Source: Magallana gigas (taxonomy: Eukaryota). Taken from it: 64,000 nt of DNA. Where the stretch lies: the NCBI RefSeq assembly GCF_963853765.1, contig NC_088859.1:12896001-12960000 (forward strand), in the 5' to 3' direction. Shown here piece after piece: positions 18,428 through 20,201 of the stretch. Every line of letters begins with the position of its first letter. The stretch's first letter is position 1. Both the position numbers and the translations under genes were made by a program. A model generated the notes under the pieces. That model saw only the letters and a list, made by a program, of their open reading frames with translations. It was not told where the DNA came from and did no database searches.

Positions 18428-20201
18428 TCAAGTGCAAGCGTCCTTAATCAGCTGTGAACTGTTGTATTCCTCTAAGGTGACGACATCATCTGCAAATGAA
18501 AAAAAGAGAAAACTATAAAAAGGAAAAAAAAGAAGAGAAAACTATTAAACATTTCCAGGATTGCATTTATGATGTTTTCTGCAATAATTTGAATGTTCAG
18601 GTCTTAGTTAAACTTTTCATATCTTTGTTAAAATGCATGAACTCAGAGTTAGGTTAAAGAGTAAAACAAATTCAACCTTTCATTGATAGTTTAGTTAAAC
18701 AATTTTAATGGTATCGAATGATATTTTCTTTTTTCAAGGGTAATCATAATTTTGACTTTTTTGTATTTATGTATATGTATATAAAGGAATTTATGTAATC
18801 CAAATACTTATAGTCTTATGTATTATATTTTTACTATGTTACAATTAATTATTTATATTAATATAGTATGAGGATTAAAAGGGTCTTTTTCGGTTTTTAT
18901 AATCATCCCGCTAAGAGCATTTTCAGGCTATTAGCCAGATCCTAAATATATCAAATTTGGCTCGAAATCGGTGTGCTTTGGAAGTTTTGGCAGGTGTTGC
19001 TCTATCACGTTTGGATTTTTAAAAACTACATTCAGAGAGATGGCATTTCAAAACAAACATTTATTACAAAACTTATTAAAAAAATATGGGATTTTTCTCC
19101 TCAATTTCTATAGATAGATCGAATAATTTGCTTTCAATAATAGCACGATGACAATGCAGTTGAGACTCCTATTTTCCACAAATCATTCCCTTCTTGATGA
19201 TTTAACCCTATTTATTATATTTAGAGGATCAAACATATTCGTTTAAGAGACGTAAATATCATAATCATAAAATTATCAGCACGTTTTATATTTATCGCAA
19301 TTTTTTCTAACTCAACAAATAATTACGAGTTATGGTATCAAGCATAATTATAGCTTCTATATGTTTGGTCGAATTATGAAGTTTTGTTGAACTTAAATAG
19401 TGGATAAAAGATATCGAAAGTCTAAATAGTTTATCATGTTTTTATTTGGAACCTGAACATAAAAGTTTTACATTTTAAGAAATGTTCGAGTTACCTTTGT
19501 TGATATCCATTTGTTCAAAAAACTCATCTAAGTCCATGAGCCCAGTAATATCAATCAATATTGACAACTCTGTTTCACTGATGCGCTGATCATCGTCAAG
19601 ATCAAAGGATTGGAATTCACAGACATTCAGTTCGAACATCTATGCAAAAACAAAACCGGAAACTTAGATGTACTCTTAAAATTTGACCTTTTGATTTACC
19701 TGGGCAATCTAGTTTTGTTTAGATAACAGTTATACTTGTCTGCTTATTGCAGTCATACTACAAACCATGGTAAGAAATTTTTGTGACTGTATGCATTTAC
19801 AGAACCATTAAATCAATAAGCGATAATCATACAAAAGTTTGAGTATATCAGGTTTTAATAATATTCTTACTTCATCGTCTGTTGATCTTTTCCCAACCGC
19901 AGCCCCCACGCCTTTTACAGCATCAACTGCAGTACGAACTTGAGCAATAGTTTTTACAGCATTTGCAGCTTCTTTTGGGATTCTTTTAATGACCCTACCC
20001 ACTTTCCTAAAGAATTTCCTTAATCTTCTCCAGGCGTATACATCTTCCGTTAGCAGCAAAAAGGTCAATGAAAAAACCAAAAGGTACCGAAACTGCACCA
20101 AAAAATATGAATCAATCATATGAATACAGCAAACAAAAATTCACAGAAATGAAAGCAAATAAAAATTAACTTTTAAAAAGTCATCAATACTATCTTACCA
20201 T
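18428..20201 (-). CDS. Cationic peptide/EF-hand precursor gene 1 (putative antimicrobial peptide), 143 aa
   Basis: Exons 20199-20201 (ATG|GT), 19871-20092, 19495-19639, 18428-18489, all GT-AG and in frame. Protein: MFRYLLVFSLTFLLLTEDVYA / WRRLRKFFRKVGRVIKRIPKEAANAVKTIAQVRTAVDAVKGVGAAV / GKR / STDDEMFELNVCEFQSFDLDDDQRISETELSILIDITGLMDLDEFFEQMDINKDDVVTLEEYNSSQLIKDACT. Confidence 0.9.

Follow-up and report, generated by a model that had tools for sequence, protein, structure and literature searches.

A secreted peptide precursor family of oysters with a predicted EF-hand pro-region behind candidate antimicrobial peptides

Introduction

Precursors of antimicrobial peptides (AMPs) with an anionic C-terminal pro-piece are well known, and styelin precursors, for instance, carry a polyanionic extension at this end; we know of no EF-hand in the cecropin and styelin families. 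For a pro-piece of the EF-hand type there is one precedent, mytimycin. In mytimycin precursors an EF-hand domain of unknown function follows a dibasic site, while the extensions of the other mussel AMPs have no defined three-dimensional structure (PMC8004829). Myticalins and modiocalins are linear cationic AMPs of mussels, the precursors of which consist of a signal peptide, a Cys-free cationic peptide, a Gly plus dibasic site with predicted amidation and an anionic C-terminal extension; molluscidins and myticalins have been singled out among the Cys-free linear AMPs, which are few in molluscs (PMC5577615). Here, we analyse a window of 64,000 nucleotides (nt) of Magallana gigas NC_088859.1 (all coordinates are window positions), in which the interval 18428-19885 on the minus strand exactly covers the coding sequence, introns included, for the C-terminal 73 residues of a gene with four exons, here called gA. 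The tail encoded there is predicted to be the EF-hand pro-region of a secreted peptide precursor, and profile scores place gA and its three tandem neighbours in an oyster-restricted, uncharacterised gene family. To our knowledge, no oyster Cys-free linear AMP has this architecture.

Results and discussion

The precursor and its gene

The frame of gA is intact, all introns are of the GT-AG type and the product has 143 residues. The predicted precursor consists, in this order, of a signal peptide, an amphipathic helix led by Trp and rich in Arg and Lys, an Ala/Val-rich stretch at its end, Gly-Lys-Arg (G-K-R) and the EF-hand tail. On the minus strand, position 19885 is the first base of the Ser after G-K-R and position 18428 the last base of the stop codon, so that the interval to which an earlier note on this DNA had drawn attention coincides exactly with the boundaries of the pro-domain.

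Mapping of RNA reads to gA recovered all three joints (18489>19495, 19639>19871 and 20092>20199) at the predicted bases in contigs of three RNA runs, with single contigs spanning exon 4 to exon 3 and exon 3 via exon 2 to exon 1, and the word depth of the exons was ~10 to 100 times that of the introns in those three runs. gA is transcribed and spliced as modelled. One of the contigs ends at 20249, on the side of exon 1 and the 5′ untranslated region (5′UTR). In a run with a different organism label we observed a variant joint, 19639>19874, with three letters replaced, which looks like an allelic or species variant.

When the window was searched by tblastn with each coding exon of gA, three further copies (gB, gC and gD; Table 1) came to light within 30 kb, all on the strand of gA, divided into exons in the same way and with introns of the GT-AG type. 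Each of the four copies has a TATAA(A/G)AG box 41-65 nt 5′ of the ATG. The modelled gB protein is 100% identical to the M. gigas "uncharacterized protein" P0001 at NCBI, gC matches XP_011438521 (P0004) in 123 of 131 residues and gD the C. angulata protein P0005 in 127 of 129. Loose read ends in the RNA runs of gA carry the gB version of exon 3, and gB is therefore also transcribed.

The EF-hand tail

The two loop patterns that the earlier note had proposed, D-L-D-x-D-Q-x-I-S-E-T-E and D-x-N-x-D-D-x-V-T-x-x-E, fit all four genes: loop 1 reads DLDDDQRISETE in gA and gD, DLDEDQKISETE in gB and DLDGDQQISETE in gC, and loop 2 reads DINKDDVVTLEE, DVNKDDAVTIQE, DVNQDDVVTIEE and DVNKDDVVTIEE in gA, gB, gC and gD, respectively. 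That ligand positions 1, 3, 5, 9 and 12 are kept while the Gly at position 6 (Gly6) is missing is true of all eight loops. The canonical 12-residue pattern, with oxygen ligands at these positions and a hydrophobic residue at position 8, was present in 8/8 window loops and in 30/30 loops of the family (15 proteins). Gly6 occurred in none of the 8 window loops and in 3 of the 30 family loops, in contrast to 1102 of 1428 canonical loops (77%) in 124 non-family EF-hand proteins recovered by the same search. Gly6 is frequent in EF-hand loops, not obligatory; by this comparison, its absence is a real trait of the family and unusual for EF-hands.

The invariant Cys residues described for both ends of the domain, in the motif NVC and two residues before the stop, were found in all four genes and in every full-length member of the family, and the mature peptides are Cys-free. 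Because both residues are invariant and the mature precursor contains no other Cys, we infer that they pair in a disulfide, which would tie the first helix to the C-terminus. Also the net charges given earlier for gB ("gene 2" of the note), -15 for the domain and +10 for the peptide, were reproduced; the corresponding values are -19/+11 for gA, -16/+10 for gC and -14/+9 for gD. The domain dN/dS (ratio of nonsynonymous to synonymous substitution rates) was 0.13-0.26 in five of the six paralogue pairs of the window and 0.57 for gB-gC. By these measures the tail qualifies as a genuine EF-hand pair under purifying selection, with the Ca2+ ligand residues kept in every member examined, and it is likely to bind Ca2+, since all ligand positions are intact.

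The fold assignment points in the same direction. The Pfam profile EF-hand_7 (PF13499) matched gA and gB above its cut-off of 30 bits (30.4 and 30.9) and gC and gD just below it (28.9 and 29.2). Among sequences in the PDB, the matches were KChIP/calsenilin, calbindin D9k, calmodulin and calmodulin-like proteins and S100A12. AlphaFold2, run with a 24-row family alignment, modelled the domain as two helix-loop-helix units with short paired beta-strands at loop positions 7-9 (residues 82-84 and 114-116), flanked by helices, at a predicted local distance difference test score (pLDDT) of 81-87; a single-sequence run gave a pLDDT of 46 and an unusable model. Foldseek matches to the modelled domain were all EF-hand lobes (KChIP, NCS-1, troponin C and calmodulin; probability ~1.0), and a feature search of the ESM Atlas returned generic EF-hand clusters only, below the 0.9 score level.

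Two other EF-hand families were considered and rejected. The SPARC profile SPARC_Ca_bdg (PF10591) reached 21.4-26.3 bits at a cut-off of 22, with only profile positions 44/45-111 of 113 matched, which is the EF-hand-pair part; the precursors of 129-143 residues hold no other module, and no SPARC chain appeared in the PDB sequence search at E <= 0.01. An extracellular EF-hand pair with cysteines is common to SPARC/BM-40 and the oyster proteins, but the oyster precursor is too short to hold follistatin or Kazal modules. Membership in the S100/calbindin D9k family was rejected as well: the calbindin D9k matches in the PDB were weak (E 2.6e-6 to 1e-3), and loop 1 is a canonical 12-residue loop and not a 14-residue pseudo-EF-hand.

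The best matches of the tail in sequence and fold are the lobes of calmodulin and troponin C, the C-terminal pair of KChIP/NCS proteins and calbindin D9k. With calmodulin-type lobes it shares two canonical 12-residue loops, paired beta-strands and, on the oyster side according to the model, a four-helix arrangement. It is unlike cytosolic sensors and buffers of the calmodulin type in being a predicted secreted and cleavable pro-region that is unusually acidic, has an invariant Cys pair and almost always lacks Gly6.

Comparison with mytimycin, myticalins and cecropin-like peptides

The precedent that the earlier note had seen in mytimycin is real, as its precursor has a C-terminal EF-hand extension after a dibasic site (PMC8004829). 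Both mytimycin and the oyster proteins are secreted bivalve precursors of the host-defence type, in which a dibasic site is followed by a single, acidic EF-hand pair of ~70 residues. However, three mytimycin tails taken from supplement 6 of the same paper and scored with the hidden Markov model (HMM) of the oyster domain gave 9.1-23.5 bits per domain, in comparison with up to 30.7 bits for generic EF-hands and at least 46.6 bits for the family. Mytimycin keeps Gly6 in both loops, in contrast to the oyster loops of the window, its tail has no conserved Cys pair, and the segment between the loops is by hand count ~3 residues longer in the one mytimycin compared. The EF-hand domain of mytimycin is described as single-exon, whereas that of the oysters comprises the end of exon 2 and exons 3 and 4, with a phase-1 intron in loop 2. 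The peptides in front of the tails also differ, that of mytimycin being a 12-Cys knot and that of the oyster family a Cys-free helix. Membership in the mytimycin-type extension was therefore rejected on account of the generic-level HMM scores and the lack of a 12-Cys peptide, and independent recruitments of an EF-hand pair are the likeliest explanation of the two tails.

The layout of the myticalin type is found in the oyster precursors in all its parts, from the signal peptide over the Cys-free cationic peptide and the Gly plus dibasic site to the acidic extension. Further similarities to myticalins and modiocalins are the multigene organization with conserved signal and extension around a variable mature peptide, and an exon 2 that encodes signal, mature peptide and dibasic site and reaches into the start of the extension (PMC5577615). 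Differences concern the extension, which in myticalins is anionic, Asp/Glu-rich, variable in length and moderately conserved (PMC5577615) and in the oysters is a predicted folded EF-hand pair; the intron after exon 2, in phase 1 in myticalins and in phase 0 in the oyster family; and the peptides, which are rich in Pro, Arg and Tyr in the former and Ala/Val-rich helices in the latter. The signal peptide MFRY...LLTEDV of the oysters appears unrelated, by eye, to the published myticalin consensus (PMC5577615).

Like amidated AMPs of the cecropin/styelin type, the oyster peptides have a Trp close to the N-terminus, an N-terminal helix that is basic and amphipathic, a hydrophobic C-terminal half rich in Ala, Val and Gly, and a C-terminal Gly for amidation. 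The Pfam profile Cecropin (PF00272) yielded no match on the peptide region at E <= 1. We rejected membership in the cecropin family on this basis; the layout is cecropin-like and the peptide an analogue only.

Distribution of the family

In a word-indexed search, near-identical proteins came from C. angulata and, in one case, from C. virginica. Next, 1.84 billion representative proteins were searched exhaustively with a profile built from the domain alone, and all retrieved proteins were rescored per domain, which separated the family, at 46.6-147 bits, from the best unrelated EF-hand domain at 30.7 bits. All full-length members above this gap are Ostreidae wherever a species is named (Magallana, Crassostrea, Ostrea and Saccostrea), namely M. 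gigas, C. angulata, C. virginica, Ostrea edulis, Saccostrea echinata and S. cucullata; the members that carry no species name are Logan fragments and one Logan transcript contig, P0035. One of these fragments, P0083, covers exon 3 and has no encoded gene on record. In databases, the members are labelled "uncharacterized" or bear an automatic EF-hand-type name.

Members with an intact N-terminus share a signal peptide that begins M-F-R-Y/x and continues with a hydrophobic stretch and a T-E-D-V-type end. In every member the domain comes after G-K-R or K-R, and the K-R-S junction is common to all. The segment between signal and tail has 33-78 residues and a charge of -2 to +14, and its composition can be Arg/Ser-rich, Arg/Asn-rich or even, in some Saccostrea paralogues, acidic. 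With signal and EF-hand tail conserved and the part between them changing fast, the proteins form one gene family of the pattern usual for AMPs and toxins. The tail is not shuffled among unrelated peptides, because it is attached only to precursors with a homologous MFRY-type signal. The suggestion that it might be a module reused across unrelated bivalve peptides, including mytimycin, does not hold: the list of N-terminal partners drawn from the domain-only HMM contains at family-level score this one family of Ostreidae, and the mytimycin tails score in the generic EF-hand range and differ in Gly6, Cys and exon plan, which refutes a shared module.

In S. cucullata, the proteins P0042 and P0166-P0168 have a net acidic N-terminal segment (-2) of no obvious amphipathic-cationic character; the signal peptide, G-K-R and the two Cys are nevertheless retained in them, as are the two Ca2+ loops, which are intact.

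A full-text literature search retrieved no match to the N-terminal strings of the peptides or to six accessions and locus names, and a search for oyster AMPs with an anionic or EF-hand part retrieved nothing relevant. The C. hongkongensis plasma peptide URP20, with a charge of only +3, and the peptidome supplement contained no fragments of the family. The oyster rows in the table of a 2025 review of marine invertebrate AMPs are Cg-Prp, molluscidin and URP20 only.

The cationic peptide

The peptides begin with (G)W-R-R, contain a single Trp and no Cys, and have a basic N-terminal and an Ala/Val/Thr-rich C-terminal half, with a net charge of +9 to +11 in the four genes of the window. Their maximal 18-residue hydrophobic moment was 0.84-1.07, compared with 0.41-0.50 in shuffled sequences (p <= 0.002; 1.07 versus 0.50 in gA). 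The peptide dN/dS of 0.09-0.19 in the four genes indicates purifying selection. AlphaFold2 drew the peptide as one long helix at low confidence (pLDDT 39-51). G-K-R is the standard signal for a convertase, a carboxypeptidase and amidation. The peptide is probably antimicrobial, as judged from these sequence properties. The same processing logic has been set out for myticalins (PMC5577615).

The peptide of gA is 12-14 residues longer than those of gB, gC and gD and contains an internal K-R followed by I-P (I-K-R-I-P, in the region 19930-19935), where cleavage might yield two shorter peptides; P0006, the C. angulata orthologue, is alike in this respect. Exon 2 of gB (28295-28480) and exon 2 of gC (43527-43712) are 97% identical, with dS = 0 in the peptide part, while identity drops to 75-80% in the flanking introns and to 87% and 79% in the two EF-hand exons (dS 0.26). 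The pattern suggests gene conversion over a short tract, restricted to the peptide exon, so that the peptide and EF-hand exons of these two genes would differ in their recent history.

Role of the EF-hand pro-region

As a whole, we consider it fairly probable, if not strongly so, that the tail is the EF-hand pro-region of a secreted precursor, with Ca2+ in a structural role and proteolytic release of a cecropin-like host-defence peptide. In the endoplasmic reticulum (ER), the domain would fold, take up two Ca2+ and form the disulfide, and the folded polyanion would balance the charge of the peptide, keeping it in solution and the producing cell safe from it in transport and storage. A convertase of the furin/PC type would cleave after K-R, a carboxypeptidase would then trim K-R, and peptidylglycine amidating monooxygenase would amidate the peptide using the Gly, leaving a cecropin-like, membrane-active host-defence peptide and the free EF-hand domain as end products. 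Ca2+ would always be bound, in the secretory pathway as well as in seawater, as a structural element, and proteolysis would be the release switch.

Across 14 members, the charge of the EF core was inversely correlated with that of the peptide (Spearman -0.69, p = 0.006, shared ancestry uncorrected); peptide/core charges were, for example, +4/-5 and +13/-15 in S. echinata paralogues, -2/-11 and +8/-17 in S. cucullata and +14/-21 in P0035. Because the domain charge tracks the peptide charge, a neutralising and escorting acidic pro-piece is plausible. The earlier note had proposed a Ca2+-controlled peptide chaperone; of this proposal, the neutralising, folded acidic pro-piece survives, while the control by Ca2+ is unsupported. 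A canonical EF-hand is expected to be loaded with Ca2+ in the ER and Golgi and to be still loaded in seawater or haemolymph at ~10 mM Ca2+. Since the secretory pathway and seawater are both rich in Ca2+, secretion gives no obvious release signal, and Ca2+ would most likely be a structural cofactor, together with the disulfide. Neither Ca2+ nor pH finds support as the release trigger, the K-R convertase site being the release step that is encoded in the sequence. With low probability, loops without Gly6 may have a lower, extracellular-range Ca2+ affinity, which would keep a switch model alive.

Several observations weigh against the favoured reading of a structural, neutralising pro-region. The charge correlation is uncorrected for shared ancestry and only suggestive, because an independent-pairs test of the co-variation yielded just 1 supported pair and 3-4 unsupported pairs, which are too few. 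In the Saccostrea protein P0042 the domain is kept beside a non-cationic N-terminal region, and therefore neutralising a cationic peptide cannot be its sole role. The AlphaFold2 model of the precursor contained no confident contact between peptide and domain (predicted template modelling score, pTM, 0.41), a result that, for a model of this kind, neither supports nor excludes binding. Finally, 27 of the 30 family loops are without Gly6, which might lower or alter their Ca2+ affinity.

A more elaborate variant, which we regard as unlikely, is an auto-inhibited host-defence peptide: the disulfide-stapled EF-hand pair would bind its own helix, as calmodulin does melittin, would stay on after cleavage as a carrier or antidote in Ca2+-rich haemolymph and would yield the peptide only to anionic microbial membranes, with the loops without Gly6 tuned to millimolar Ca2+. 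If true, such auto-inhibition would be a new mode of AMP control, evolved independently of the EF-hand tail of mytimycin.

Rather unlikely is the related idea of a clamp, in which the tail would hold the basic helix in the manner of a calmodulin lobe until a change of Ca2+ or pH in seawater freed the peptide. Calmodulin binds basic amphipathic helices such as melittin and mastoparan, and the oyster peptides belong to this class (in gA and gD, positions 1, 8 and 14 are occupied by bulky anchors) and sit next to a single EF-hand pair of the size of a calmodulin lobe; AlphaFold2, however, did not dock the two with confidence, so that the binding and masking of the helix suggested in the note is left unsupported. 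The charge complementarity throughout the family would suit a clamp, yet the precursor has an explicit proteolytic release site, and a disulfide joining the first helix to the C-terminus could hamper the open/closed movement of calmodulin-type sensors. Even if loops without Gly6 could shift the affinity down to where extracellular Ca2+ matters, peptide binding of the calmodulin type is strengthened and not weakened by Ca2+, and there is no obvious drop in Ca2+ on secretion.

The tail could also be a Ca2+-dependent sorting or condensation signal that self-associates in the Ca2+-rich, mildly acidic trans-Golgi and packages the precursor into regulated secretory granules, a reading by analogy that we hold to be distinctly unlikely. 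The analogues are the acidic Ca2+-binding granins and the Golgi EF-hand protein Cab45, which sorts lysozyme. The acidity of the domain (-14 to -19 in 73 residues) goes far beyond the need of Ca2+ ligation, the invariant Cys pair points to a lumenal folded module and the domain is kept where the N-terminal peptide is non-cationic (P0042), but the tracking of charge is not expected of a pure sorting role and a single EF-hand pair has no known oligomerisation motif.

That, very improbably, the EF-hand domain is itself the functional product, in haemolymph, mucus or shell-forming fluid, and the basic segment a pro-region or a non-immune signalling peptide would agree with the domain being the most conserved part beside a segment varying in length and charge, with the near-threshold scores of SPARC_Ca_bdg, an extracellular EF-hand family, and with G-K-R amidation sites being typical of neuropeptides too, but the SPARC match is limited to the generic EF-hand part of the profile and without a PDB counterpart, the window peptides are strongly amphipathic and under purifying selection, and AMP and toxin families classically combine a hypervariable mature peptide with a signal and pro-region that are conserved (PMC5577615).

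Features and surroundings of the cluster

Table 1 Positions of the precursor genes and their elements in the window
Feature	Position	Strand	Description
gA pro-domain	18428..19885	-	73-residue acidic EF-hand; gene model, RNA splice joints, Pfam EF-hand_7 30.4 bits; last 15 nt of exon 2, exon 3 and exon 4 including stop; introns of 231 and 1005 base pairs
gA exon 1	20199-20201 (coding), region 20199..20274	-	ATG only; 5′UTR upstream
gA TATA-type box	20267-20274	-	TATAAAAG, upstream of ATG
gA exon 2	19871-20092	-	Remainder of signal peptide, 46-47-residue cationic amphipathic peptide (+11), G-K-R, five pro-domain residues
gA G-K-R site	19886-19894	-	
gA exon 3	19495-19639	-	Tail
gA exon 4	18428-18489	-	End of tail and stop codon
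gA EF-hand loop 1	19568..19603	-	DLDDDQRISETE; ligands at 1, 3, 5, 9, 12; Gln at position 6
gA EF-hand loop 2	18467..19507	-	DINKDDVVTLEE; phase-1 intron 3 splits loop residues 4/5
gA Cys 82	19619..19621	-	Cys of NVC, entering helix A; invariant across family
gA Cys 142	18434..18436	-	Cys of C-x-stop; in every full-length family member
gB ("gene 2")	26798-28584 (coding), 26798..28646 with TATA box	-	131 residues
gB exons 1-4	28582-28584, 28295-28480, 26976-27120, 26798-26859	-	EF domain 26798-28309
gB TATA box	28639-28646	-	
gC	42942-43811 (coding), region 42942..43860	-	131 residues
gC exons 1-4	43809-43811, 43527-43712, 43131-43275, 42942-43003	-	EF domain 42942-43541
gD	47670-48463 (coding), region 47670..48527	-	129 residues
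gD exons 1-4	48461-48463, 48196-48375, 47814-47958, 47670-47731	-	EF domain 47670-48210

Directly upstream of the peptide cluster lie three long tandem open reading frames (ORFs) of 517-520 residues on the minus strand (3849-5402, 9051-10604 and 14403-15965), all of which match the Pfam carboxylesterase profile COesterase (E 1e-128 to 1e-133). Mobile elements are interspersed in the cluster: between gB and gC, a minus-strand ORF of 727 residues (34389-36572) encodes a reverse transcriptase with a C-terminal GIY-YIG nuclease, a combination that is the hallmark of Penelope-like retroelements, and a remnant of a hAT-family transposase is located at 39613-40788 (minus strand; hAT dimerisation domain, E 8e-20). 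Two more reverse-transcriptase fragments were found at 31345-32376 (plus strand) and 61795-62607 (minus strand). The region 18100-18200, ~230 nt downstream of the gA stop, is of low complexity, with CCAT repeats followed by poly-C, poly-A and C-rich runs.

Conclusions

The tail of the oyster precursors would be a second, independently evolved Ca2+-binding pro-region of the AMP type beside that of mytimycin, and the convergence of the two is itself notable. The role of EF-hand pro-regions becomes tractable with this family, as the domain is small, the single Trp can serve as a reporter and natural variants with peptide/core charges of +4/-5, -2/-11 and +14/-21 are at hand; P0042 and P0166-P0168 are a natural test case for an EF-hand tail without cationic cargo. 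If the peptides are active, oysters at large would have a multigene family of amidated, cecropin-like peptides, so far overlooked behind "uncharacterized protein" labels, and this would bear on disease resistance in a major aquaculture species.

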